Origin: Geosiphon pyriformis uo1
Lineage: Eukaryota > Fungi > Glomeromycota
Assembly (NCBI GenBank): GCA_016748015.1
Contig: JAAOMT010000270.1
Location: forward strand, 1-52,465
DNA: 52,465 nucleotides
Direction: 5' to 3'
Positions within the stretch are counted from its first letter, which is position 1. Every line of letters begins with the position of its first letter. Shown in pieces: positions 1 to 52,465 of this stretch. The position numbers and the translations under genes were made by a program. The notes below the pieces were generated by a model, which did no database searches, had not been told where the DNA came from, and saw only the letters and a program-made list of their open reading frames with translations.

Positions 1-557
1 GCACGCACAGAGGTATAACAATTAATGTCATTGACCGTAAGTGGAAGCAGACATTCGGAAGAACGAGTGCACGCACAGAGGTATAACAATTCATGTTATT
101 GACCGTAAGTGGAAGCAGACATTCGGAAGAACGAGTGCACGCACAGAGGTATAACAATTAATGTCATTGACCGTAAGTGGAAGCAGACATTCGGAAGAAC
201 GAGTGCACGCACAGAGGTATAACAATTCATGTTATTGACCGTAAGTGGAAGCAGACATTCGGAAGAACGAGTGCACGCACAGAGGTATAACAATTAATGT
301 CATTGACCGTAAGTGGAAGCAGACATTCGGAAGAACGAGTGCACGCACAGAGGTATAACAATTCATGTCATTGACCGTAAGTGGAAGCAGACATTCGGAA
401 GAATGGGTGCACGCACAGAGGTATAACAATTCATGTCATTGACCGTAAGTGAAAGCAGACATTCGGAAGAACGGGTGCACGCACAGAGGTATAACAATTC
501 ATGTCAGTGACCGTAAGTGAAAACAGACATTCAACAGAATGGGTGCATGCACAGAGG
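1..557. repeat. 68-bp tandem repeat array (left end, ~8.2 units, truncated by window start)
   Basis: Unit GCACGCACAGAGGTATAACAATT(C/A)ATGT(C/T)ATTGACCGTAAGTGGAAGCAGACATTCGGAAGAACGAGT repeats with 68-bp period; last unit degenerate; ends ...CACAGAGG at 557. Confidence 0.98.
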
Positions 558-770
558 TTAGAGAACACCACACTTGGCGATATAAAGGAGTTGGAAACCC
601 CGTGCTTGGTTGAGTTTCTTCGGTTAAGGTTGGGGTTCTTTCCGGTAAAGGATGCCCCCCTCCCTCACCCAACACTTAGAGCTAGAAGAGATACGTCAAC
701 ACCCTTACCTGGATTGTTCTATCAACTAGAGGTTTTAACCTTGGAGACCTGCTGCGATTATCAGTATGAC
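558..770 (-). pseudogene. Degenerate, internally deleted 28S (LSU) rRNA domain IV fragments
   Basis: Matches to recalled reverse-complement fungal LSU in colinear order: 558-591 weak (~TTAGATGACGAGGCATTTGGCTACCTTAAGAGAGT); 598-621 CCCCGTGCTTGGTTGAGTTTCTTC (~CCCGCGCTTGGTTGAATTTCTTC); 667-682 ACCCAACACTTAGAGC; 702-770 ...TTCTATCAACTAGAGG...CCTTGGAGACCTGCTGCG.TTATCAGTA.GAC. Confidence 0.85.
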
Positions 771-880
771 TGGTGAGTCGTTAGTTGTACTGGTTATAGC
801 TGTTGTGTTTGTGAGTTAGTGGACGTCGGTAATTCGTCGCCGATAAAGATAAGAGTAATCGCATATAGGATAAAATTTTG

Positions 881-925: not shown

Positions 926-3900
926 TTTATCAAAAATTATGCGTTTATTTTTCACGTGAAAATGCTAAAACGCGAAAACATGAATCCAAGAATACAAGGG
1001 TGGGGTTAACTAAACCTTTTTAGTAAAATTGATTTAAAGATAGCCTCCTGAGTTTTTAATATGTAGTCATTAAAAACAAAGCGTCACTTTTTGAAACCTT
1101 GTAATCAGTTGAGTACTTTCTGGAAATTTTTTATAATATTACGCGGATCCTCATGACTAATATAATATTAAGCAGATCCTCATGATTCATTTTTTTTTGA
1201 CTCGGCTATCCTAAAATGGCTAAATACAATCAGTATGGGAAATCAAATTCACATCCCCCTTAAAACCGTGGGACCCATATCTCTTATGCGAAAATTAAAA
1301 CACTAGACTCAATAATGTAAATTGTCACAGTATAAAGAACATGGTGTTCATATTTCATAGCCGAAAGCGCCTCCAAACATTATGGCAAATTACTCGAGTC
1401 CAATGTCCCCCTTTCTTTTTGATCGTCCATTGAAACAGACCTTTATTTCGTTATACGAATACCCCTGTTTTTTAAAGCGTAAATTTCATATTTTTTTTCA
1501 TCCTAAATTCTTTAATCAGCTTATCTATCAAACATCTAGACTATCAATTTTTTGAATTAATTGCGTCATTTAGTTATTCATTTATTTACTTAATAAAATT
1601 GAAAGAAGCTCTTATTTAAATAATAAACTATTATCATACTTTTGTATAGAAAATCTATTTCTGAACATACAATAGATTGTAATCTTACATTCCAATGTAA
1701 ATTTGCAATGACTAAAACACATCATAAGAAACAAGTCAAATTATAAAAATTAAATATCAAAAGATTCTTTTTCCTGAAAAAACCTTTTCACACAATTCCG
1801 ACAAGGGCCTAATGAAAAATATTTTACACAAGGAAATATCGTTCCATATGATTCCAAAGTTGACACAGCTGGAATTGCGATATTACCGTGGCCCAATTGA
1901 GAATCTTTGAAAGTTATGATTGTTGTTATACTTCACACTACTATTTAGTCATCCAGAACTTAAATGGTACTTAAACAAGCCCGGAATGCTCTTTCTGAAT
2001 ACATTAATTATAAAAATTTGATCGAAAATATGTAATTACTGCAAAAAGAAGCACAACAAAATAGTGTTTTTTTGTATAAAATTAATAAATACCTTGATTA
2101 ATTTATGAATAAATAAAAAACGTGATTTAAAATATATCTGCATATTTTCTATAAATACTAAAAAAAAATTTAAAAATTGTATATCAAAGACCAAATTTTC
2201 AAATAATATTGATTTGGTTTATTAGTTAATCAAAAAATGAATCTTTAAAACAATAAAATAAGTTAGATAATAAAAAAAGAAAAAAAGAGTTTTGAATTAA
2301 ATATTGTGAATTACTCAATAAAAGAAATCAATTTCAAACAACAAAGAAAATTAAATTATAAATAGTTTTTATTAATTTTAAGCTGATTATATTTATTAAT
2401 TAAAATTTGGAATATTAAGAAAGAGATTTGGAAATTTTATGCTATGTCAATTATATTTTTCTAAAAAAGTTTAAACAATTCAGTCAATAATCAAGTCAAC
2501 AATTTATTTTTAAAATAAAATATTATCCTGTATAATTAACATATAATAGCTGAATAGAAAAATTAACTATAACACTATTATTGTTAGCAAATCTAAGGAG
2601 TTTGATAAAAAATTTGATTTTTTAATAAAACTTAACGTGTAAAATATTCTAAAAATATATTATCCTGCAAAATTATTTTCAACAAATAATAATAGACAAC
2701 TTTCAAATTCAAAGAATTATTTTTTTTCCATATAATTTTCGGTGATAACATTCTCTTTATCGAAAGTAAAGTATTGCATTGTTTATTTTTAAAAGAATAA
2801 TAAACAGGATCCTAAAATCAAGAAACTTCATTAATTTCGACAAAGATATTTTTTTATAAAACAAAATCTTTAAACAAATAGATTGAGATAGGCATTTTAT
2901 AAGAGCCTTGCTCGGTTTTTTTTATTTCTTAAATATTTCTTGCACTTTAGCGGGAAATTTAATTAAAATTTTTTTCCAGAGAGAAACTACTTTTTCACAT
3001 CCAATCTAAAACCTAAAACCTTACATCTTACATCTCTCATACAAGCCCTCTTTGAGGCAATATATTTCAGAGAAGATAGAAATCAAATTTCTGCAATTAC
3101 TTTTTTTTTAATTTGTATATTGTTAAAATTAATTTGATAAGTAAAAACCTGTTTTTATAATTTCTTAAATAAATAATTGCTGGAAATAATTGATATTTGT
3201 TATTAGATTTTAAAAGCATTAAAATTATAACAGCTGTATTATTTTTTGTTAAAAATAATAACCGTTTTTTCTATTTTCAGATTTTTTTGGAAAAATTAAC
3301 AACTGAATTTTGAAATTAATTGTATTTATTGAATTGTTCACATATTAATTAATTTTACATTGTTTTTAGTTTCTCGTTTATCTGTTATCTATTTGGACCA
3401 AAAATTAGCATAAAATTATTCTTATTATCTTATTATTTATATTAATTATTTTTGTCCTTTATTTTATCAATAACTCAATTTGTAGTAATTTACATATGCA
3501 ACTAAATTTTATAATTAAGTCATGTATTATTTCAAACTATATAAAAATAAATATCTAAAAAAATTTGTCAAAAATTTTGCAAAAAATAATACTCAAAAAG
3601 TGCATTTTATAATAGTTAAGAAGTTTAGATGGTTAAAATGAATACAATTTACTAATACAAATCCCATTTATTTAAAAATAAAATCAACAAAAATATTTTT
3701 TCGATATTTTTATTACACTTTAAATTAATAACTCTTAAACTAACTAATACTAATGCAGTTAAAACTAGTTTAATTTAAATTTCTTAAGCTTATAATAAAT
3801 TTTCAATAATTATATTAAGATAATTAATTAAAACAAAACTTTGAGGTTTTGTGTTTAGTTTGGCCAAAAATTTCTTAATTTAAACCAAAAATAAAATTGG

Positions 3901-6599
3901 TAATTTTGAGCAAAAGAAAAAATGACTAAAAGATTTTTTTGCTTCAATAGCATACTTGAAAAAGATTGTGATTTTATTTGTATATTCAAAATCAATATTT
4001 TTGACTTTAATATTAATTTTTTTATTTAAGCTTGATTACAAGTTTAGTTTAATTATTGCAACAAATGGTAATTTTGAAACCAAATTTTGTAATTAGTTGT
4101 AATTTTAAAATCATTAATTAGTTTTCGAAATATTTAGTTCAAATTTGACATTAATGAAATAAGTTTTTTCCCAAAATTTGCGTTTTTAAAGCACTTAATT
4201 TCAATTTTTTGCATTCGATTAGAGTAAAATTAGAGTTGTTTTAACTTGTGAATGGAACTTGGGATGAATTTTAAATTTTTAAACAATTTTTAGTCGAAAA
4301 ATTTTTTGAATACATATATTATGATAGATAATTTTAATAATATTGGACATTATATAAAATAAAACAGTTTTCACAAAAAATTAATTCAGGCAAAATATTG
4401 TTTTTGTTTTTTGTTAAACAAAATTGTTGATAATATTTGTGAAATTTATGTAAAAATTTAATATACTGTAAATAACAACTATATATTTTCTGTTTTTCTC
4501 TGTTTAAACAAATTTGTTTGATCAAAAATTAAATAGATATTTTGTAAAAAATAAAATTTGTTCACTAATAAAATATCAAGTTTTTTATGTTACTTTATCT
4601 TTTTGTGACTCTAAAATACAGGAAACAAAATAGTAGACTCTAAAACATAGCCTGAAAATTGAAAAAAAATCATAGAACTGATGTTAAGCAAGTTGGAATT
4701 TTAGTCATTAACATATTTTGCTTGAAATCCGAGCAAGATTCTAATTTCTGTAAAGATGAGTCTAGGCTTTGTTGATAAAGGATTAAAATTCAATGTTTTG
4801 TTATTTAAAGGATAAAATTTTTACCTGAATGTGTTTGATAGCCTATTTTTTTGTGCATAAATTCAAAATGGAAATTGAAATTCGAAACTTTACTATTTTC
4901 CCATTACTACTTGGTAATAGTAAAATTGAGAATTATGCTGTTTACATTATTCAAAAACTAGAATTTGATGAAAACAGTTGAAATTACAGCAAATATCCAA
5001 CCAATATTGGAAAATGGTTTTTCATTAAATATAAATCTGATAGCTTATTGCTAAATACAAAAAAAAGATCAATCTAACGGATGACTAATAATAGATTATC
5101 TTTCAAAAATTATCAGTCACATGAATTAGAGAAAATTGGTAAAATTAAAATATTGTAACATAGGGATGAAATGTAAAAATTAGATAATATTTTTTTAACA
5201 CCAAAAACCAAGTTTTTTAGCCAACCATTCAGTAAAAACCATGCTAGCAACAGCAACTAAATGAAATATATACAACAAATTTTTAGTTAATTTCTAAGGT
5301 TAATGTTTAAGAACAATAAATGGATCTAAATATCTCTATTTTTACAAATCTCTTATTGTATTTAAAAAGATTTTTTGTAATACTGATTATGTTAGCAATA
5401 TTTTACCGAATAGAATTGGCTATTTTTATAGCTCTTTTGAATACTTTTTCATTCATTTTTGGGTGGGTGGATTCTAAATTAATATAAAAGTATTTTGGCA
5501 AGGAATAATATAAAATTACTTTTCGAATTTATTGTAATGTTTTACAATGTTATTATGTTATAGAATGATAAACTAATATGTTAGTTAAAGGTGTTTTAAA
5601 CTTATTCTATTTTAAACATGATCATTTATAAAAAGATATAACTATTTTTTCAATACAATTTTAATAAAATATTTTTCGAATTTTTGAACAAGAGGAATAA
5701 TCAATTAGATAATTTTCTTGTGTGTAACTTTAAATTTAATTAAAACATTTTTAAAAAGCTTATCTAATTCCGAAAAATTATTTTACCACTATATTATTAT
5801 TTTGTTTTTGAATCCTAATAAGTTAAAAAAATTGTGCCAGAGACCATTAAATTTCAATTGTTGATTTTTTTCAAATATATACACATAAATTAGAAAATCA
5901 ACTATTTTTTCTAAAGAATCTAGGCACATAAGAATATTATCATATTGCTTCTATCCCCTGGTATTAGTTGGAACAAATATTATCTAGAAATTTCAACATA
6001 AATAGCAGAAAATATAAGAACAGTATCAATGAAGTTTTTATAACATTTGAATTTATTATTTAATTGAAAACTAATCTTAGATTCTTGTATCTTATGTTTA
6101 AAAAAAGGCATGAAAATATCTTATATTTGAAATCAAAAATTTCTCTCTTAATAGCCCTTATTTTTATTGAAGTTATTTTATCCTAATTAAAAATTCTTTA
6201 TTACTTTGATCATGATTAAAATGAAACCTAATTTTTTTTAAATTTTTTTTTCCTTTTATTATTTCTAGTCCAAGTATTTTACATGTTCAAACAAAGCCTA
6301 TTTATGAAGATTTGGCAGCCAATAATCTCGAACAAAATGCCATTCTAGTTATTTATTCTTTTAAGCTAAATACTGAATTAACAAAAGAATTGAACATTAA
6401 TAATGATTGGATTTTAAACAAACGACCTAACTAATTAACTCATGCATATTTTATTTTTAAAAATCTTGTACACCTTTAGTATCATTAAATTCTTATGTTT
6501 ATCAAATATAGCAGATAAAATTAAAAGTTATCTGATACATTTAATTTGAGAATGCAATTTTCAAATATAATTATTAATTTTGAAAATTTTCTCAATTCA

Positions 6600-11179: not shown

Positions 11180-12531
11180 TATAATTATAATTATAACCAA
11201 AAAACTAACATATTAGATGGAATACCTTCACAAGAGATAGATGACTTGGAGCTTTTGCCATCTATAACTAATAATGAGTTATTAGATAATTTACAAGGAT
11301 TCTCAGTGGAAACACCAGCAAATAATCCCGATTCACCAATTCAAGAGAATATAAGTCTTCAACTAGCTTCAGATAATTTCTTCGACAATACAAGTCTTTT
11401 ATCAAGTCAAAATATTGAAAATGATGAAACCCTATTTGTTAAAGCTGGCTCAAATCAAGGAATTAAGCAAAAAATTACTGATTTAGAGAGTAATAACATC
11501 GAGTTGTATGGATTCTCTGCACGAACTCTTTATTGTGGTTTAATTTTGCCCACCCAACATGTTATATATTCTTCCAATGAAATTCGAGGTACATGGATTG
11601 AATATTAAAATTTTTCAAGTCTTTTAACTAATATATGTATTAATTGAAATGGTTATTCTTTAGTCATGGTAGAAAAAAATGACGTAATCCCTGAAATAAT
11701 TATTAGTTTTCGTGGTAACACACCAACGACTAATATCATTAGTGATATCACTCTAACTAAATATCCTTATGATCAATCTTCAAAAGTTCATCAAGGATTT
11801 TTTAAGATTTTTCAAAAAAATGAAAAAGCATTGATTAATAAGGTGGTAAAGATGATAAGAAAGAATTCAGATTTATCTTTAACTATGGCTGGCTTTGATT
11901 CGGGTGGTGGTATGTAAAAATTTTTCAAAAAGAGGGAGAAAGTATTTTTATCTTAACTACTCTTTGATTGAATAATAGAAGGCGAAATAACTTTTTTAAA
12001 TTTCTTTGTATAACTTGCTTCTTATTTAGTATATGCAATATTTACAGCTTTAGCTATAAAATTTCAAGGCGGTTCACTTCAAACCAAAGATATTAAACTG
12101 TACACATATGGACAACCTCGTATCGGTGATAAAGCTTTTGCACAGCTTGTGACAAAAAAACTAATTGTAAAACGAGTTATTTATGACAACGACCTTATTC
12201 CACATAAACCTCAAAAAGCTCAAGGATATCTAAATTTTGACACAGAGTATTGGGTTAAATCTCTTGGATCTGGTAAATTTCAGACTTTTCAATGTGAAGG
12301 TATAAAAGACCAATCTGGAAAATATTTAGATGAAAATCCGGTAAGTTTTTAAGTAAATGAGGAAATAATCATTTGAATATCTTCTAATTTGATAAAGGCC
12401 AATAAAAATATCAGTATTAATCGAATTTATTATTTTAGCAATGTTCAAATTCTGTGCCTCCACAAAAATTCTCATTGACAACACATGCAGATACATCTTG
12501 GGGTTTAAAATTTGACAGTTGTAAACAATAA
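10883..12531 (+). CDS. Class-3 lipase-family (alpha/beta hydrolase) protein, probably secreted, atypical nucleophile elbow; 4 exons
   Basis: Exons 10883-11588, 11664-11909, 12030-12340, 12439-12531 joined in frame by GT-AG introns. Motifs IIISFRG, VHQGF, AGFDSGG, LYTYGQPRIGD, NDLIPHKP, EYW, CSNS, TTH. N-terminal hydrophobic segment, then Asn-rich region with an (AAT)n tract at ~11129-11179. Confidence 0.9.
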
Positions 12532-25220: not shown

Positions 25221-27505
25221 ATAAATTTGTTATGTTTCAAAGAAAAAATAAAATTGCTTATATTAATTTAATGCCATTTTAATAACAATGGTTTTTTCAA
25301 TTACTAATAATGAGAATATTAATATAATTGAAATTAAATTTTCTAATACTAATTTGAAGCAATATAATTTAAAACAATTAATTTTAAAATTTGAATAACA
25401 ATAAAATTTAAAATCAAGTTTTTTTTATGTTTTTTTTGATTAGTAATTTTTTTTAAATAATTTTTTTTTAATTATTAATTAATTTAATATTAATAGTAAT
25501 TATGATAATAAAATTAACATAAATAATCTTGTTTTGAATTTTTTAAAAAAAGTTTTATATTTTTTAAGAAGTTTTTATTTTCCAAATTCTTTTGAAATAA
25601 ATAATATAAATTTTTGAGTTTAATAATATTATCAAAAGTTTTAATCATTTTTGTGATGTTGTTAATGTTGTTTTGCTGTCAATTTTATTGTTAATAAAAC
25701 TAGTAAATTCTAGATAAACTAATTTATTTTCGAAGTATTTTTTTATATTTTGAATTATTATTGTTGTTGAATTTATAATAAAATAGCCAATTCTGTGTGA
25801 ATTACTTTGTATTGTTACTTTGCGATAAAATTTAATTTTTTTACAGAAATTTTCATCTGTAAGCTTCTTAATAATATATAATTATTTTGCTGTAAAAGTC
25901 AAAAAGTCTCAATTATAAATTATCCAATAATATTAGAAAAATAATTAAAATAAAAAAAAATGCAGAGGAAATTGTTTTTGGTCTAAACCTAAAATTAACT
26001 AAGTAATTACTAAAATTAGTAGCTAAGCAATTTTAGAATATTAGTTAAAATTTTAAATTTTAAACAGCAATACTTTTAAAAAAAGTTTGGATTTCAAAGT
26101 AAATTTTATTTAATTGCTTTTTTGTAACTAAATTGATTATTTTGAGCTAATATAATTTCTAAGAAAATTAGTTCTAGTTAAAATATTTTTTTTGAAAAAA
26201 AAAGTTCTTTATTTATACAACTTATTATAATACTATTCTATAATTTTGTATTTTTGCTAATATTTTGATAAATTAAAAATATATTTTGATAAACTACAAG
26301 TTGTTTTTATAAACTATTAAATATTTTAGTAAACTGTTAAATATTTCGTCGAATGTAATTTTATTTAAATAATAGTTAGTATTGTTTTTATATTTTTAAA
26401 GATAATAAAAAGTTTTTTTTGCATATTTTTCTAGTTTTTAATAAATTTTATAATGATTAATGTAAAATTATATGTCTATTAATAATTGGTATATTGTCAA
26501 AATTTTTTGAAAAATTTTTTTTGTAAATTTTGGGACTTTTTTGGCTTTTAAGAAATATTAAATTTGTTTATTAATGTAAAAATTAAGTTTTGATTTAGCT
26601 AAAAAACAGTTGTTTGTTAATTCCAAATTTTTTAAATAATATTTGTATTTTGATTTTGTCACTTTTGTTAATTATTAATAATAGTAATTATTTTTTGTAA
26701 ATTATATCTTACAAAAAACACTAAGTATTAGAAATAATTTTTTGAGTTATGTTTTATAATTCAATACGATAATTTTTTAATATATTTTGAAGGTTTTAAT
26801 AGATCCAAAGATTTTAGCTTTGAATTTTTTATATAAAATACAAAGATTCATAATTTAGTAACTAATAATACTTGGTATCTTATTTTTTAACATAAAAGCT
26901 GATTTATTTTAATGTTTTTTACTTATTTAGTAAATATTTAACTTTTAATAAGTTAAAATATGTTTATATTTTTATCCTTTACTAAATAACTTTAATATTA
27001 TAATCTTAGTATTTATTCTTTAATCAATTAGTTTATTAATAAAATAATACAATAAATAAAAAATCAATTAGTCAAATAAAAATTAATATTTTATTAATAA
27101 TTATAATTAAGAGTTATTAATTTAATATAATAATATTTATAAAGTAATGTTTTTAGTATTTTTTGTTTTACAAACCAGGATAAATAAAATAAATATTTAA
27201 TAAAATAAATAAAATTTATGAAGTTTTGTTTAGTTTAATTAATAAGTTTATTTAATTATTGAGTTGTAATTTTAAGTTTTAAATTATTTAAAAAATTAGA
27301 ATTTAAGCTAAATTAAATGTTTTTTTATTACTATTATATATATAAAATTTTAGTAATACAAAATATTCTGGTATTTTTATATTTTTTTGGTATTTCTAAA
27401 ATTTTTAGCACTTTTAATATTCTTAAATATTTTTGTGCATTTTTGAAATTTTTGGTATTATGTTATTTTTTTAGTTATATACTTAATTGGCTAATATATT
27501 ATATT

Positions 27506-29819: not shown

Positions 29820-32330
29820 ATTCTGAAAGATCATATTGATAAAAACAGACCAAAAACAGACAAACTATTATAAAAACAATTTGTATTACCAATTTTTTTT
29901 CAAAATTGCAAAAAATAATAATAATAATAATGAAGATAAAGATAAAGATATAGATGATAATAAAAATAATAAAAATAATGAAAATGAAGATAAAAATAAA
30001 AATAAAAATGAAGATGATTAGAAAGAAAATATTAAAAACACAATTGAAAAAATTAATAAATAACAAAAAACCAAAAAAAGTTGAACTAGTGCAATATCAA
30101 TCTGTTATTTGGTATTTGTATCTTTTAAAAAATAGAGAAAAAAATAAGATTTTAGTAAACAATTGCAACAATTTATAAAAAAGACAAATATCGTGTTCAA
30201 TATATAAAAAAATAGGCAACAATATGCTTAGAAAATAATAATTATTTTGTACTAATATTATTATTATAGATAAAACATTATTTCAATATTTTCAAGAAAA
30301 ACACTTATTTAAATCTCTGTTTTATGATGAAATTGTATTTATATATATGACAGCTTATTTTCGATCAACAAAATTTAAATTAAATCCTTACCTAGTAAAA
30401 CAATATCTTGAGAAAAAATTTTTTTAACCTTAGATTCAACATGCTACAAACAATTAGTATTCGGACAGCATAAAAATAGATGTATTATTTTAGTTGTTTA
30501 TACAAGTGATATTAAAAAAATTTATATTAATAGTTATAAGCATTCTGATATAATTATATATCAAAATTAATATTTAAGACAAATTTCTAAGTTAAAACTA
30601 TTGATGCCCAAATAGCTTGATAAAAAATATATAATAAAAATACTGCTTGACTTGCATTCAAATCAAAAATCACATATTTTAATAATATATGATGAATTAA
30701 TATTTTTTACTTATAATAAAATATATGCTTTCTGGAGACCATATAGAGAACAACTATTAAGAAAAAAAGGTATGAATACAGACTTAAATATTAGTAAATT
30801 TTTGACAGAAAAAATTAAGTAGTTAAAAGATAATAAAAAAAAAACACAAATAATTATAGCATTGAATACAAATCATAATAAGTATTAGTATAGTAAAAAA
30901 CTGTTAGTTTAAGTATATAAATCAATTACTATCTTTGAAAAAACACACTTGAAAGCTATTAAAATATAGGTGTTTAATAATTCAATAATTTATACAGCAA
31001 TAGTATCAAATTTATTAAATACAAAAAAATAAATATATATCCTAAAGATTAATAGCCAAAAATATACTCTAATATATAAAATGATCACATTTTTATCAGC
31101 CAAAATTTGAAATATTAATTAGCACAAAATTATCTCTATAATTCTTATTAATTAACATATATTATTTTTCAAATTTATTATTATTATCTTATCAAATTAT
31201 TCAAATTATTATTCAATTAATAATCTAATTTATATAAAACACAAATGTAACCAAATTATAATGATTAGATTATATAATACACTAAACTATATAACAGTCA
31301 AAATTCGCCAAAATAACTTGTAATTTAACAAAATATATTTTTAATTCACCAAAAAATTAGAAAAAAAAAGTATTAAATCATAAAATAGTACTATAACTAA
31401 TTGTATAAAAGAAAAACATTTTTCTTTAAAAAAATATATCTTCTACTAGATATCTTTTTTTATATTTTCTTTATTTTTTTATATTATTAAGTGGTTTACA
31501 GTCAAAATTTTTTATAAAAGAGTTAACTTTTACTGTAAAGTAACTACACATTATTTTAAAAAGCTTATATATGAAAATTTTTTATAAAAAAATTAACATT
31601 TACTGCAAAGTAACTATACTAATAATTGGCAGAAAATTGGTTATTTCATTATAAGTCCAATAGTATACACAGTCTAAAATATAGAGAAATACTTTAGAAA
31701 AAAAATTAGCTTATTGAAAATTTAACAGTTTTTATTAGCAGCAGAATTAACAGCAAAATAGCATTAACAACATTAAAAAATAAGTAAAAAAATCTTCAGT
31801 AACAATGTTTAAAATATGGTTTTTCTTCTTGATTATTCAAAAGAAAAATTATGAGACTAAGTAAAAGATAAAAGTTATTTTGCGAAAACAGAGATTATGG
31901 CAAAAAAGATTTGTGACAAACTGTTAAAGATATAAGAACAAAAAAGAAAATAATATTGAAATGGTAAAATGTTGTGTTTATTGAATATTGGCTAATTAAT
32001 CAGATTTTTAAGTACAACAAAGATTAATACAAGAAGAATTGGAAAAAAAGGACACAAAGTAATTTTTTATCTCAAGTTCTATTAGAAACTTAATTATATA
32101 AAAATGTATTAAGATACCGTAAAAACATATACATAACAAATTTGTAATTATTTCTGAATTGGCCTATATTATATTGTTCTTAAAGTTTTAGATTCAATTT
32201 TTAATAAAGCATATTTATGCATATATTAGACTGAGTTTTTGGTAGATAGATACATATTTAAATAGACTAACTGAAACAGCAGCTAAATATACTGTTTGCA
32301 AATAAAAGAGGTTGTTGAAATGTTTCTTAA
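29820..32330 (+). mobile_element. Decayed IS630/Tc1/mariner-type DDE transposase (fungal, possibly Sagan-like), split by an insertion at ~31092-31805
   Basis: Translated remnants KKIYINSYKHSDII (~KDIY.DGHER.DV), HILIIYDELIFF (~HILVTHDESTF), EQLLRKKG, IFEKTH, VFNNS (~FDNS); after the gap LANQSDF, GHKVIFYLKFY.ELNYIKMY* (~GHK.IFYPKFHCELN.IEMYWG), VLDSI, AAKYTV. Many stops. Confidence 0.8.
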
Positions 32331-38164: not shown

Positions 38165-39383
38165 ATGTCACCCCAACGATACTTTCAAGCTCTATCTAAT
38201 GATTTCGGCAATTCATTTAACAATGAGAAGTTCTCTGATGTTAAAATTATAGTTGGCGAAGCACCCAATATCAGAACTTTTCATGCTTATTCTAGAGAAT
38301 ATTATTGATTCCCTTGAAGAATATTTGATTGAGCATCATGCAAAAGAGCTAGAAAAAAATTTCGCCACTTTGCAAAAAACTTCATTTATGCATGATTCTT
38401 TCAAAAAATTACAAGAATTCTGCACCGAAATAGCTGTTAACAATCCAGCTATTGTCTTCAATTCCCAAGATTTCACCTCCCTCAGTGAAAATGCTCTTTC
38501 CTCAATTTTAACCCGGGATGACCTGAATATAGAAGAATCTGAAATATGGGAAAAGATTGTAGAATGGGGAGTTGCTAAATTGGATAACAATATTCAGACG
38601 AAAAAAGTTCTTTACTGGACAGATGAAAACTTTAACGCCTTTAAGGAATCCATTGAAAGGCTTCTACCTTTAATCCGCTTCTTTAACATATCTTCAGTTG
38701 ACTTCTATCACAAAGTAAAACCATTTGCGAGAATCTTACCTGGAACTTTTTATGAAGATCTTTTACATCATTATCTCGTACCGGGTAGTCATCAAAAGTC
38801 TGTAGACGCTCAGCCATTACGTCGTCCTCGATCAAATATTGATTCAAAGCTTCTTCAATCGCATAATATGAAACAGCTAGATCATTGGATTCAAAGCAAA
38901 GATACAAATATTCCTTTTGAAAATCAACTTGGAAATGATTTTAAATTGTTACTTCGAGGCACTCGAGACGGATTCACTCCAGCCGATTTTCATCGATTAT
39001 GTGATAATAAAGGAGCAACAGTAAGCGTAATAAAAGTGAAAGGAACTGGTCAGCTAATTGGCGGCTATAACCCACAATATTGGCACTCTCGGGATGAACG
39101 ATTAGATGGAGAAGGAAGTTTTATTTTTTCCCTTGGAGATGGCAAAGCTGGAAATGCTAAACTTAGTAAATTTGTTGGGGAAGTTGGACCTTATGGTGCG
39201 CCAAATTATGGACCCTGGTTTGGATGGGGCTGTATGCGATTAAGTGGCCATGATTTTAAAAATAATCCAGGGTCTATACGTAGAGCGACACAATATGAGC
39301 ATTCTATAATGCCTGGATCAGAAAATCAAACGGTAGAATTTTTTGTCGAAGAGTATGAAGTTTTTCAAATCATAAAAAGATAA
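38165..39383 (+). pseudogene. BTB-BACK-TLDc protein with BTB core deleted and frameshift (downstream BACK+TLDc frame open)
   Basis: ATG 38165 gives MSPQRYFQALSNDF...FSDVKIIVGEAPNIRTFHAYS then stop at 38306-38308. A different frame carries BACK (DDLNIEESEIWEKIVEWG, LPLIRF) and TLDc (FKLLLRGTRDGF, FHRLCDNKGAT, LIGGYNP, SFIFSL, YGPWFG, EEYEVF) to TAA 39383. Confidence 0.85.
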
Positions 39384-46300: not shown

Positions 46301-49179
46301 ATATCCAATTACCGGATCTGCAAATCAGTAATTCAAAAGTGAAGGGAATCTTAAAAAATAACTTTAAAAAAGTTTACAACCCTTCATAAATTAGTATTAC
46401 AATTTTATGGTTAAATATTATATGTTATCTTTCAATATAGAAATCATCTTCTGGTACTACCTATCAATATCCTACCTCATTTCATTTAATAATTGGGTAA
46501 GAAACTATATTTTCTAGTGAAAATAATATTTAAATCACAGGATGAAGGAAAATCCGCTACCAAATTTATCAAATAACTATTTCATCATAAACTAATGTCT
46601 TGAATGTTTTCTCGTCTCGACCTAGCAAGATAAATCTGAACAGATCACTATTTTGAATGTGAGGAATTTAAATTTTTTTTTGCAATTTTATATATATACT
46701 TTTGTTGATTGGGTTTCCTAATTTTAATCTGAAATTTCGAAGGAGCTTAAAGTATCGAATAAGTTCATAATAGATCCTTTGAACATTTCGATTTCGAATT
46801 AATGCCATTTCCATGAAATTTCTCTCTAATTTTTTTTTCTTTTTTCAATTTTACTTTATCGACAAAAATTTTATTCTCAAAGGAACAGCAATGTAATCCA
46901 AAATATTTGGCCTTGGGGTACAAATTTTTTTATAATTTTGTTTAAAAATCTTACTTTTGACAAAAGAATCACAGAATTTGAATATGAGAACTAAGGTAAT
47001 TGATCTCGCGAGTTATTCTGTTAATTGAATTATAAAACTCGTATTTCTCTACCCAATAATTGAGATAAAATATTTTTTCGATTACTTGAAGAATAACTTG
47101 TTTGCTTTATTTGTAAAATAAATGGGGCATTAAAAAGTTGCAATTATTAAAATTAGATATAAAGATAAAAGCTTGGAATATTAGTTTTATATGTTGTCAT
47201 ATTATTTCTTCTGAGATATTGATTTTACAATATCAATTTTTTTACACAATATTGATTCTGTACAATTGACAACATTTTTTTTGTTTAAATCAAAGAAGAA
47301 GCAAAATACATTTGATTAAAAGCTAAAGTTTAAATTATGTTTATTTATCACAACAAATAAGATTGAGCTATTCTTAAAGTTGGAAATAATAATTTTTAAA
47401 TTTGGTAAAACCTCTTGAAGTTCTCTCAATCCACAAAAATGTATTGAATACAAAAGCTTTTTCAATCCGTTATGTTTTAATCATAAATAAAATTTATTGT
47501 AAAAAAAAACTTATGTATTGAACTTAATAAAAAGATTAAAAGGTTATTTGGGAAAAATGAAAAGAAAAATTATGCTTAAAAATTTATCTGCGGATAATGA
47601 GGGTTTTTGCTTAAAAAGTTTAATTTAATTTCTAAAAACATATTTTTAATCAAGAGGAAATGTAAGTTAAAAACTAATCATAGGGCTATCGGAATTTGAA
47701 AATGTAAAATTTATATGATATAAATCAAGGATAATAAAATTTTTGATATCGTATTACTATAATTTTCCAAAAGATAGTTAAACTAGCAATATTTTACCCT
47801 AATAAAAAAGATTTTTAAGTAATATGAAAATACTCGTTCCAATAATGCAAAATATATTTTTAGCTGAGCAATTCACAACTTTTTCTAATTTGATTTAATA
47901 TACAAATTTTCACACATCATTTTAATACATATCGTGAGTTAAAGTCTGAACACTATTATAGTCAGAGAGCCTGGAATTTTTTAAATAAACTGTCCAAACA
48001 CAGCCAACAGTTTTTGTGTATAATTTTTCTTATATACAATTTTCACTCCTTAATTTCAATTATCTATACTCGTGGTTATGAACTTGATCATATTCAATTG
48101 TTTAATTGTTTTACTTGAGTAAAATAGGCTCTGGTGAATATCGAACGAATTATTCGCCTATGCAAGTATACGGATAACCTTATTTAAAACAAATTCAAAC
48201 CTAGTGTCTCTACTCCAAAGCAGTCTCAAGAAAAATGGCTTTGCGTAAAGAAATCCATCTTATTTTTTGAGGTTTCAAAGGTGAAGAATTTCACTCTTAG
48301 AAAATTTATGTAAAATACTATACTGAATATATTACTGTTTAAAAGTCGCCTTTGAGGCCTATAGTCTGTTGCATATAACTTTTGTGCTTACACTAAAATT
48401 TTTGTTGAAATTGTTATTGCATTTTTATAATTTTGGAATTTTGGAAAAATAATTGTTGAAAATTTTGACATATATTTCAGTAATTATTTTTTTTAAAAAA
48501 TAAAACAACTATGTTTTATCTCTTTAAACAGCTGCTTTATGCAAAGATTTTAATGGGATTTTTTAGAATTAAAAAATTTAACAAATTTTTCTTATGCGAG
48601 TAGTTTCATCTTGTTTCTAAAAAACTGAAAATTCATTTCTTTACTTAACCAAATATTATTTGAAACATCCTTTTTTCAAAATGCTAATGCTGATTGTATT
48701 GGCGAATTTACTACAGTGTTGTTGCTAAAATCTAAAAAATTTATCACTTGAATGTCAAAATTACCTGATACTTCAATTTGTTTTGTTGTTAGCAAATCTT
48801 TTGCAGAGTTTCTTATTTCTGAAGATTTTTAAGGTTTATAAGCTTTTTTTTGAAAGTTTTGTAAAAAGACTATTTTAAAACTACTCCAATGTATTAAAAA
48901 TAAATTTTCGAAGTTTTGATATTAGATTATTTCTAAATAAAGCATTTTTAATATTACAAACAAAATAATTTAATTTCTAAAAAACAATTATAAAAAAATT
49001 AATTTGGATTTAAAAATAAAGACAGTATATTAATTCAACAGAGCTAATGGCTAATTGATTTTGAGACTATTAATTTTAATTAAAGAGAAATTAATTGTAA
49101 AAAAATTTTAGTTTTTGTTAATTATAATATCACAGTTGAAAATCTAGTTATAGATTTGACTATTTGTTTTTTTATTAAC

Positions 49180-50460
49180 CATATGAGCAAAACCCTCGAA
49201 ATTGTAGAAAAAAAATCAAATATCACCAATAATTATAATTTATATATTTTTTTATCTTTAGATTAAACCCAACTATAAAGTTAAATTCAAGTAGAATTAT
49301 TAGAAAAGTGTCGTTCAACACTCGAGTAAATTTATCACATGAAAGTGATTATGATTATGATTATGATGGCTATTGGAACCGATCGAAATCATTTGAAAAA
49401 CATCATAAAAGCAACACATCATCTAAAAAATGTTTACTCTGATCGGATAATCTGTTTATGGGAAAATTGAAAAAAATCACTCTTTTCGCTAATGAAGCAT
49501 CTTGTTTAAATCTGGTCAACGATCAAGACGTTATAAAAATTGACTGTTGAATTTATGATATTAGCATCTTACATTATATACTATATGATTAATTCCCCAA
49601 AATTTCTTTTTTCTAAAATTCAAATCTCAATCGTCTATCTTAGCGAAAATAACAAATATACGTAAAAACCAAATTTTCTTGGTCCAGATTCGTGACAAAG
49701 AGTTAGATTTAGAAGTTACCTCAGAAAAATGACTCCAAACGCGATACAAAAGTATAAATGATCTGATGATCGATAAAAATTTTTCCCTTAAATTTCAACT
49801 TGGGTGGACAGAGTTAAGGCGTCAAATTGACCATAGATGAAAAGGAATTCCGCCAGCACATAATTTGAGTTTTGTTGGACATGGCCTTGGTGGTGGTACA
49901 TAAATATTTATATTTTGATCGAATCTCTTGACAAGACCCATCTAATTGACATTAATTTTTAGTGTTTACTGTACTTGGAGCTTTCGAACTCTTGACAATA
50001 AAAGCGGCTGAATTATCTCAGATTAAAGTTTACACATATGGTGAACCTCGATTCGGAAACTACCAATTCGCTCATAAGCTAAATTCCTCTAAGAATCTAA
50101 AAATATATTATAATAATTTTATACCCAAGTATCCAAAGAGTTATCAGAAAGCATAATATTTACACCATGGACAGGAGCTTGGATATCGTCAAAAGATTGT
50201 GGCTGTGCTACTACCGATAATAATAATGGGGATGATTTCAACATTTATTTATGCTCAGGCCCCAAATCCACGAGAGGGATAAAGTTGAAAAGCCAAATAA
50301 GTTGTTATAGAATTAAAATTTAGTTTTTAATCTGAACAATTCTTTAACAATTATTAACCATTTTTTATATATTTAGAAATGCATCGAATGAAGAAGCTTT
50401 CGCATCACAATGTCCTCTTATGGTAACAATCAATAATTCTTAAATGGCCATTTTTTTTAC
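49180..50460 (+). pseudogene. Class-3 lipase-family pseudogene
   Basis: LSFVGHGLGG (49877-49894), intron 49896-49962, VFTVLGA...KVYTYGEPRFGN, YLHHGQE, DCGC, IYLCSG; stops/frameshifts; outer boundaries approximate. Confidence 0.8.
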
Positions 50461-51308
50461 TATTAAAAATAATGACACTAAAATTAAATTTAATCCCGAT
50501 AATTAAATTTTTCTAGAAAATATTTATTTAGATATATTGTCTATTTAACTAAATCTAAGGCTTCACTATTTTTAAATAAAAAGGTTTAAAACTTGAAGTA
50601 ATTAAAATTTTATTTTGGCCTTGCTTACATTGAAAAATTATTTCAGCGTGGATTTAATTGAGGCAAATTAAAATAAAATTATCAAATCCCAATAAAATTT
50701 GTTTTTCAATTTAAAATTCTAGTTTTAATTAAAAATAAATACTCACATTTTCTCATTTAAAGCTTATGGACATAAAAATATTTCCAAATTAATACTGACC
50801 ATAAAATATTTTATTCATGCTGATCAAATTAATATATTTCGATAGCAAGGGCAGAGAGTTTTCGTTTTACACGGTGAAAAAGTATATTAAGCATGTTCAA
50901 TATTACCTATTTTAATATTTAAATCCGTACTTGTGTAAAAAAGATCTCAAGAATATTTGATCAGCGGTTTAAAAATAAGTTATTATTGCTTGGACTTATG
51001 CTAATATTAGCAATTCTTAAAGTTATTACCGAACTATTATCATTTAAAAATACTTATATTAATTACAATTATTTATTATACATTAGGTTTTTTAAATATT
51101 TTATATCGATCATTTCAAATTTCTGAATTAGATTTCAATAGGCTTAAACAATAAACAGTAAATAACAAGAGATTATCAGAATTGGCAACGGGTGAACAAT
51201 TTTGCCATTGTAAAAACCCTTCCCTGATAACTTTGTTATATACTGATATAAGTTTTATACCTATATAGACTAGATGGATATAGAAAAGATAATTGACAAA
51301 AATGACCA

Positions 51309-51422
51309 CCCCCTCCCGCTCTTCACTCCTGTAAGAAATCTTAAACTACAACTACTCCCTCCCGCTTTTCACTCTTGTAAGAATTCTTAAACTACCCCCC
51401 TCCCACTCTTTATTCTTGGAAG
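51309..51422. repeat. Short tandem array (~3 copies of CCCTCCCGCTCTTCACTCCTGTAAGAAATCTTAAACTAC-like unit)
   Basis: Three diverging copies starting CCCTCCC. Confidence 0.8.
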
Positions 51423-51524
51423 GCATAAATAACAGACTAACATTATCAATTCCTCACCACGTAACCCTAAAATTTAATTCAGTTATTTGATGATCGATTG
51501 TTCATGATTTTCTATTCCGTATTC

Positions 51525-51895
51525 ATTGGCTATTTGAACGTTGAATTGCGAATTACTAGTGGGTGATGGTTATTTGAATGTTGAAATCGCGCATTTTTGG
51601 TGGCCAGTGGTTATTCGAATGTTGAGTTGCGAATTATTGGTAGGTGGTTATATTTGAATGTTGAAGTCGTGCATTTTTGATGGCCGGTGGTTATTCGAAT
51701 GTTGAGTTGCGAATTATTGATGGCTGGTGGTCATTCGAATGTTGAGTTGCGAATTATTGATGGCCGGTGGTTATTCGAATGTTGAGTTGCGAAATATTGA
51801 TGGCCGGTGGCTATTCGAATGTTGAGTTGCGAATTATTGTTGGCCGGTGGCTATTCGAATATTTAGTTGTGAATTATTGGTGGGTGGTGGTTATC
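51525..51895. repeat. 40-bp tandem repeat array (~9 units)
   Basis: Unit TGGCCGGTGGTTATTCGAATGTTGAGTTGCGAATTATTGA; anchor recurs at 51601, 51681, 51721, 51761, 51801, 51841, 51881. Confidence 0.95.
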
Positions 51896-51908
51896 CGTCA
51901 ATTGTTGG

Positions 51909-52033
51909 TGTCAAACTAGAGTCAAGATCAATAGAGTCTTCTTTTCCCGCCGATTTTGCCAAGCCCGTTCCCTTGGCTGTGGTTTCACTAGATAGTAGAT
52001 AGGAAGAGTTTAACCCATGATGCACATCAATAA
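51909..52033 (-). pseudogene. 28S (LSU) rRNA fragment (domain IV/V boundary), degenerate
   Basis: TGTCAAACTAGAGTCAAGATCAATAGAGTCTTCTTTTCCCGCCGATTTTGCCAAGCCCGTTCCCTTGGCTGTGGTTTCACTAGATAGTAGATAGG closely matches recalled reverse-complement fungal LSU (about 9 mismatches per 100 nt), followed by degenerate TTAACCCATGATGCACATCAATAA (~TTAATCCATTCATGCGCGTCACTAA). Confidence 0.92.
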
Positions 52034-52465
52034 CCGTAAGTGGAAGCAGACATTCGGCAGAACGGGTGCACGCACAGAGGTATAACAATTCATGTCATTG
52101 ACCGTAAGTGGAAGCAGACATTCGGAAGAACGAGTGCACGCACAGAGGTATAACAATTCATGTCATTGACCGTAAGTGGAAGCAGACATTCGGAAGAACG
52201 AGTGCACGCACAGAGGTATAACAATTCATGTCATTGACCGTAAGTGGAAGCAGACATTCGGAAGAACGAGTGCACGCACAGAGGTATAACAATTAATGTC
52301 ATTGACCGTAAGTGGAAGCAGACATTCGGAAGAATGGGTGCACGCACAGAGGTATAACAATTCATGTCATTGACCGTAAGTGGAAGCAGACATTCGGAAG
52401 AATGGGTGCACGCACAGAGGTATAACAATTCATGTCATTGACCGTAAGTGGAAGCAGACATTCGG
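52034..52465. repeat. 68-bp tandem repeat array (right end, ~6.3 units, truncated by window end)
   Basis: Same unit and orientation as 1-557; begins CCGTAAGTGG at 52034. Confidence 0.98.

Follow-up and report, generated by a model that had tools for sequence, protein, structure and literature searches.

A 68-bp minisatellite within an rRNA gene relic points to a lineage-specific dispersed repeat family in Geosiphon pyriformis

Introduction

What kind of element places a 68-bp tandem array between two fragments of a large-subunit (LSU) rRNA gene, and how did it come to lie there? The question is raised by a stretch of DNA from the glomeromycotan fungus Geosiphon pyriformis (hereafter the window), which comprises an entire contig, C366 (52,465 bp; GC content 13-37%), of a 128.3-Mb assembly in 792 contigs. 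Glomeromycotan rDNA is unusual in that it is dispersed, not tandem, and the LSU zone concerned is the classic insertion stretch of R2, whose 28S target is TTAAGG/TAGCC, of I-PpoI/L1925 and of L1949 introns. A first-pass annotation had described the locus as an rDNA-derived element with an amplified insertion at this mobile-element hotspot. Our analysis bore out the rDNA origin and the location but not the mobile-element cause, and the reading as a hotspot insertion is unproven and rather unlikely.

Results

The array lies exactly between adjacent positions of an LSU relic

Searches of the whole window against Rfam at gathering thresholds returned zero matches, and a tRNA search of the window found none. 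At a permissive threshold, cmscan matched the minus strand of positions 51893-52033 to positions ~2310-2411 of the LSU_rRNA_eukarya model; the match was weak overall (15 bits, E 1.2) and contained a near-perfect 70-nt core. The genome holds two full-length LSU genes (C633:698261-701929 and C659:1039955-1043623), and we mapped the relic against the former, at locus L056. Positions 51909-52009 were identical to it at 93 of 101 sites (92%), and after a 10-nt deletion positions 52010-52033 matched at 19 of 24, extending the alignment to L056 5403, where the relic sequence ends in ...GTCACTAA. Positions 51909-52033 thus correspond to L056 5268-5403, with antisense LSU on the plus strand.

At the other end of the contig, position 558 (TTAGA...) equals L056 5404, the base directly after L056 5403, so that zero rRNA bases were lost between the two sides. 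The stretch from 558 to 591 is diverged from L056 but colinear; positions 598-620 matched at 21 of 23, a score reached by none of 300 shuffles; and 647-773 aligned as patchy pieces, the last of which (698-773, 65/76) ends at L056 5933. On this side, 530 nt of LSU (L056 5404-5933) are compressed into 216 nt with their order kept. Moreover, the relic carries the own-lineage GGCAAAATC LSU variant. According to Tandem Repeats Finder (TRF), the stretches 1-558 (8.2 copies, 95% matches) and 52033-52465 (6.4 copies, 98% matches) are built from one 68-bp unit. TRF, cmscan and the L056 alignment therefore agree with the borders of array and LSU fragments given by the first-pass annotation, and the alignment to the organism's own rDNA confirms its proposal that the flanks are rDNA-derived, adjacent and colinear.

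The module consists of the following parts:

51895-52033, minus strand: LSU-left relic, from cmscan and the L056 alignment.
52034-52465, unstranded: 68-bp minisatellite, left-hand part, 6.4 units, with the first-position unit at its start, cut by the contig end.
1-557, unstranded: 68-bp minisatellite, right-hand part, 8.2 units, cut by the contig start, ending with a last-type unit.
558-776, minus strand (the rRNA sense strand): LSU-right relic, colinear with L056 5404-5933, with large deletions.

By our own count from L1925, the junction corresponds to E. coli position 1953/1954, in the loop of helix 71 (H71). The motif CTCTCTTAAGGTAGC (the I-PpoI/R2 target) lies just past the junction in the intact gene and the R2 cleavage point is 23 nt away, in line with the earlier estimate of ~20-25 nt. 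Both of the intact LSU genes (2/2) are continuous at this site and carry no insert.

Outside 51909-52033 and 558-773, low-stringency BLAST of the window against rDNA gave only AT-rich noise. A decayed rDNA unit spanning the entire repeat was therefore rejected. No other rRNA similarity was found near the module in Rfam scans of the window ends and six full copies, which at E 10 returned only the LSU patch and chance matches. The array itself is foreign to rDNA, as had been supposed: the 68-bp unit, like the 40-bp and 46-bp units described below, reached no higher score against the rDNA locus than shuffled sequences did. A 21-nt spacer of the unit showed marginal similarity to the adjacent LSU tail (P about 0.035-0.04), and the remaining 47-nt insert had no match in the rDNA locus or in JGI metagenomes. 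Exact-pattern scans of JGI metagenomes for the array unit and for the 150-nt core described below gave 0 matches.

The module is part of a kilobase-sized family with at least 40 copies

Left flank, array and right flank each served as a genome query, and each yielded 40 scored matches (57-63 first-look candidates). On many contigs, LSU-left, array and LSU-right recurred in one fixed order and orientation, in at least 40 places overall. The locus is thus no local event; it belongs to a kilobase-scale, non-coding family. That one array is bordered by both junctions was confirmed by 13 complete copies on other contigs in which left flank, array and right flank are contiguous. The same junctions and the same internal LSU deletions were present in 13 of 13 readable complete copies, and because all copies share them, the chimera must have arisen once. 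The relic has the attributes of a dispersed rDNA pseudogene, being colinear with the organism's own rRNA (93/101, 21/23 and 65/76 in order), non-functional, multicopy and located outside rDNA units.

Homology between copies extends well beyond the module, leftward to 47083 in three copies and rightward to ~4491 in at least five. The duplicated segment is 2.5 to ~9.4 kb long. Its subfamilies form a mosaic in which indels are frequent; two candidate element ends, at 50804 and 1278, were rejected as indel or subfamily breakpoints. The segment around the module comprises the following features:

47083-51306, unstranded: left arm, long form; three copies begin at 47083.
49239-50320, plus strand: class-3 lipase pseudogene in the left arm, its frame broken into short pieces.
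51307-51422, unstranded: 46-bp tandem repeat, 2.7 copies by TRF.
51527-51894, unstranded: 40-bp tandem repeat, 9.2 copies by TRF, varying in copy number among family members and without LSU similarity.
777-1107, unstranded: non-rDNA right flank, in which the window is 53-95 bp shorter than other copies.
1108-4491, unstranded: AT-rich right arm, with 58-90% identity among copies and many indels; several copies end at ~4487-4496.

Neither arm contains an ORF of at least 70 aa, and no transposon or carrier genes were found in the segment, where Pfam returned only Lipase_3 (49956-50153, E 6.6e-7; the orthologous piece in the C563 copy reached 1.4e-12). No direct or inverted repeats (LTR or terminal inverted repeat) were found between the two arms, and Helitron-like ends were not seen at 47083 or 4491. 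Likewise, no target-site duplication, terminal inverted repeat, poly(A) or other termini were found at the module or the segment, in a comparison of copies other than the longest ones (C644, C627, C357, C707 and C31).

Further lipase sequences occur in the window and elsewhere. A second Lipase_3 fragment lies in the middle of the window (12014-12349, plus strand) and has no DNA similarity to the left-arm lipase, and a third paralogue (34% amino acid identity), which may be intact, is located upstream of the C667 copy (L053:1475-2213). The association of lipases with the repeat may be a matter of chance within a large gene family. In the C563 copy, a 180-aa ORF (L049:7246-7785, minus strand) splits the right arm between the equivalents of window positions 2005 and 2087; its sequence looks, on visual inspection, like a FAR1/MULE-type domain, and it had zero Pfam matches at E 0.1. 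Short-read contigs of run X2 contain joints between LSU-left and the end of LSU-right with 5-13 nt in between (equivalents of L043 4671-5140). Neither the array nor the invariant core is present across these joints, and both may be missing from some family copies or variants.

Array growth is confined to middle units

With head-to-tail units in the 10-100 bp class and a varying copy number, the array is a minisatellite by definition. In the 13 complete copies it measures 180-319 bp, that is, n x 68 plus ~47 nt, corresponding to 2.7, 3.7 or 4.7 units. The units differ by position. The first is diverged and is 71 nt long in one subfamily; the last is partial and characteristic (...GTGAAAACAGAC...GCATGCACAGAGG); and between them stand one to three middle units per complete copy, to which copy-number change is confined. 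Because these unit types are positionally conserved, the sequences place an array of about three units in the common ancestor, before the family spread, and later changes are gains or losses of middle units. As a separate observation, every 68-bp unit (e.g. 52034-52101) contains GTAAGT followed 36 nt on by CACAG, and the NCBI gene model P0002, an ab initio prediction only, shows apparent splicing between 68-bp units.

Both ends of C366 fall inside the array, and the combined length is at least 14.6 units. The middle units at the 5' end alternate between two variants, forming a 136-bp higher order. A private variant, GAACGAGT, is found at both ends of the window, in eight middle units altogether, and only once among all other loci compared; similarly, TTAATG occurs four times in the window, again at both contig ends, and 0 times in all other loci compared. 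Judged by these shared variants, and by the first-position and last-type units standing at the proper outer ends, positions 1-557 and 52034-52465 look like two halves of a single array that has expanded to at least 14.6 units. One array at both contig ends requires either a tandem duplication of 52 kb, with two sister arrays 52 kb apart, or a circular molecule, and either geometry would fit C366.

Between its two ends, C366 carries a 376-aa ORF with BACK (E 1e-8) and TLDc (E 6e-11) domains (38253-39380, plus strand), an ordinary nuclear gene; genes of the BACK/TLDc type are expanded in these fungi. The middle of the window (24-30 kb) has a GC content of 13-15%. Here, 25249-26306 and, further on, 31311-32037 have a diverged repeat in common with L056 2331-3422, immediately downstream of the intact C633 LSU gene (identity 60-72%, E 1e-42 to 1e-56). 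Elsewhere in the genome, partial LSU copies exist beyond the two full-length genes at C751:5110-6131 and at C659:998745-1001628; the latter consists of four colinear pieces, has the look of a decaying rDNA unit and lies ~40 kb from an intact unit.

A 150-nt stretch beside the array is nearly invariant

We computed nucleotide diversity (pi) over 14 copies and compared each region with the core at 558-707 by Fisher's test:

558-707 (core): pi 0.011, 8 of 150 sites segregating.
51895-52033 (LSU-left): pi 0.051, 27 of 139 segregating, p 2.5e-4.
708-776: pi 0.073, 19 of 69 segregating, p 1.1e-5.
777-1107: pi 0.069, 73 of 307 segregating, p 2.3e-7.
1108-1257: pi 0.17, 85 of 144 segregating, p 3.9e-25.
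51045-51526: pi 0.28, 435 of 472 segregating, p 1.7e-93.
51527-51894: pi 0.28, 281 of 333 segregating, p 1.9e-66.
1258-1627: pi 0.35, 305 of 326 segregating, p 1.2e-86.

Pairwise BLAST of copy L045 against the window illustrated the same pattern, with 97.7% identity over 558-771 and 73.7% over 767-1627. The core is the part most conserved among copies, yet it is the part most diverged from true LSU, and a neutral pseudogene model alone does not explain this combination.

The core is covered by a reading frame that extends from the final array unit across the relic:

501-776, plus strand: 91-aa ORF, probably no gene.

Its only matches were Geosiphon pyriformis predictions named 'hypothetical protein G9A89_...', located at other copies of the family, and Pfam returned zero matches. 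The frame differs between copies after about residue 75, and one copy has a 17-nt deletion. These points argue against a protein-coding gene, and because the frame is not kept, any constraint on 558-707 would act on DNA or RNA, not on protein.

In one alternative reading the module is a maintained functional unit, in which the 68-bp repeats and the invariant core would provide the promoter and first exon of a non-coding transcript that is multicopy and spliced. The low diversity of the core holds across subfamilies whose flanks differ by at least 25%, a TATAAA at 581-586 is invariant among copies, and every copy has a GTGAGT after the relic. However, neither strand of 558-776 folds better than shuffles (z +1.2 and +1.0), and gene conversion between GC-rich tracts could yield the same pattern; we consider a maintained unit unlikely, though the most probable of the alternatives. 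The evolutionary form of this idea, that a 28S fragment was turned into a new multicopy transcription unit with 68-bp upstream repeats and an edited, TATAAA-bearing 150 nt as putative promoter and first exon of a spliced non-coding RNA, kept by selection at dozens of loci, is likewise doubtful on the sequences at hand. The near-invariance of the core may reflect either selection, for example on a promoter or first exon from which the family is transcribed, or gene conversion among the copies.

Mobile-element readings lack the expected signatures

If the array were the remnant of an rDNA-specific mobile element (an R-type non-LTR retrotransposon, a Pokey-like transposon or a group I intron), the element would once have sat in the H71 loop of a working 28S gene, and the gene copy so interrupted would later have decayed and dispersed. 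The clean junction without loss of rRNA bases fits this scenario, as does the site, 23 nt from that of R2 and, by our own count from L1925, the I-PpoI/Tetrahymena intron site (PMC3679873), 2-4 nt from L1949/L1951; moreover, L1949 introns can expand by direct-repeat arrays (PMC3679873). Against it, the position equals no described site exactly: the junction lies 23 nt downstream of the R2 motif in the organism's own LSU, and both intact genes are free of the insert, which differs from the residence of group I introns in functional rRNA genes. No reverse transcriptase, endonuclease, R2 3'UTR or ribozyme was detected among ORFs, in Pfam or in Rfam at E 10, and Intron_gpI was absent from cmscan results at E <= 10 (window ends and six full copies). 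What is inserted is a 47-nt unit plus repeats, the minimal insert being only ~47 nt, with no coding remnant, target-site duplication, terminal inverted repeat or poly(A). We therefore regard a mobile-element remnant as improbable.

Still less probable, in our assessment, is that the LSU-array-LSU module is a small SINE-like or MITE-like mobile unit with a 28S-derived body that inserted repeatedly. Transposable elements with rDNA pieces are known, namely SINE28 (28S pieces) and Pokey (IGS-derived 200-bp repeats) (PMC10946416), and the module is conserved far above its surroundings. However, homology continues for kilobases on both sides and conservation fades gradually, without sharp ends; the module has no ends of its own of the kind seen in SINE28, nor a poly(A) or LINE-type tail, target-site duplications or terminal inverted repeats; and in none of 21 loci was the 540-bp module bordered by target-site duplications and unrelated sequence.

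An assembly artefact, such as a chimeric join of rDNA and satellite reads, might be suspected because C366 stops inside the array at both ends and several other copies lie at contig ends, but it is scarcely credible given identical junctions deep inside large contigs (C673 at 603 kb, C771 at 301 kb and C643 at 193 kb) and the presence of the module and its junctions, highly repeated, in DNA contigs of runs from two independent studies.

Discussion

Collectively, these findings make it probable that the locus belongs to a non-coding dispersed repeat family, specific to the Geosiphon pyriformis lineage, that formed around one ancient rDNA pseudogene fragment. Within the known class of rDNA-derived dispersed repeats, it would be a new, species- or lineage-specific case.

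The course of events may be pictured as follows. About 660 nt of the organism's own LSU gene (domain IV, including helix 71) were copied out of rDNA; the copy has lost internal segments and has non-rDNA sequence exactly in the H71 loop. The original insert would have been a filler of ~47 nt, perhaps from break repair, and tandem duplication of this insert together with ~21 adjacent nt could have produced the 68-bp unit, the number of which was probably altered by unequal exchange or replication slippage. The single chimera was multiplied to at least 40 places within a segment of 2.5 to ~9.4 kb, presumably by segmental duplication or with a carrier element and not by transposition of the module itself. 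The 150 nt near the array may have been held constant by selection or by gene conversion between copies, and growth of the C366 array to at least 14.6 units would have broken the assembly at both contig ends.

The family shares features with several known systems and differs from each. Like SINE28 and Pokey, it combines an rRNA-gene fragment inside multicopy, dispersed non-rDNA sequence with internal tandem repeats; unlike in them, no SINE/LINE tail, transposase, terminal inverted repeats or target-site duplications were found, its unit is kilobases long and non-coding, and its array lies inside the rRNA fragment, not beside it. With rDNA pseudogenes or orphons it has in common an origin from the organism's own LSU, a loss of function by deletions and a location away from intact rRNA genes, whereas its decay is uneven, one part being 92% LSU-like and its neighbour barely recognisable but near-invariant in 14 copies. 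The insertion occupies the same LSU domain IV stretch as R2, other site-specific insertions and the L1925/L1949/L1951 introns, and it is equally clean, with no target bases lost; in contrast to R2 and L1949/L1951, the junction is at 1953/1954, 23 nt from the R2 site, and bears no ribozyme or protein signature, and unlike the targets of R2 and group I introns, the functional rRNA genes here are uninterrupted. Finally, the array resembles ordinary minisatellites in its head-to-tail 68-bp units (2.7 to 4.7 copies, up to at least 14.6), in edge units more diverged than middle ones and in the higher order of the expanded array, but what sets it apart is its inheritance as one array by 40 or more paralogous loci, at each of which it is framed by the same rRNA-derived sequence.

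The main consequence is for annotation: masking should treat these loci as a single repeat family, they should not be recorded as rRNA genes or R-element insertions, and the 'hypothetical proteins' now predicted at them should not be taken as such. Two points deserve the attention of specialists: the near-identity of 150 nt amid a drift of 5-35%, and the expanded array, by which C366 seems to close on itself. Should the core prove to work as a promoter or exon, the family would clearly exemplify how a fragment of an rRNA gene can gain a new function.
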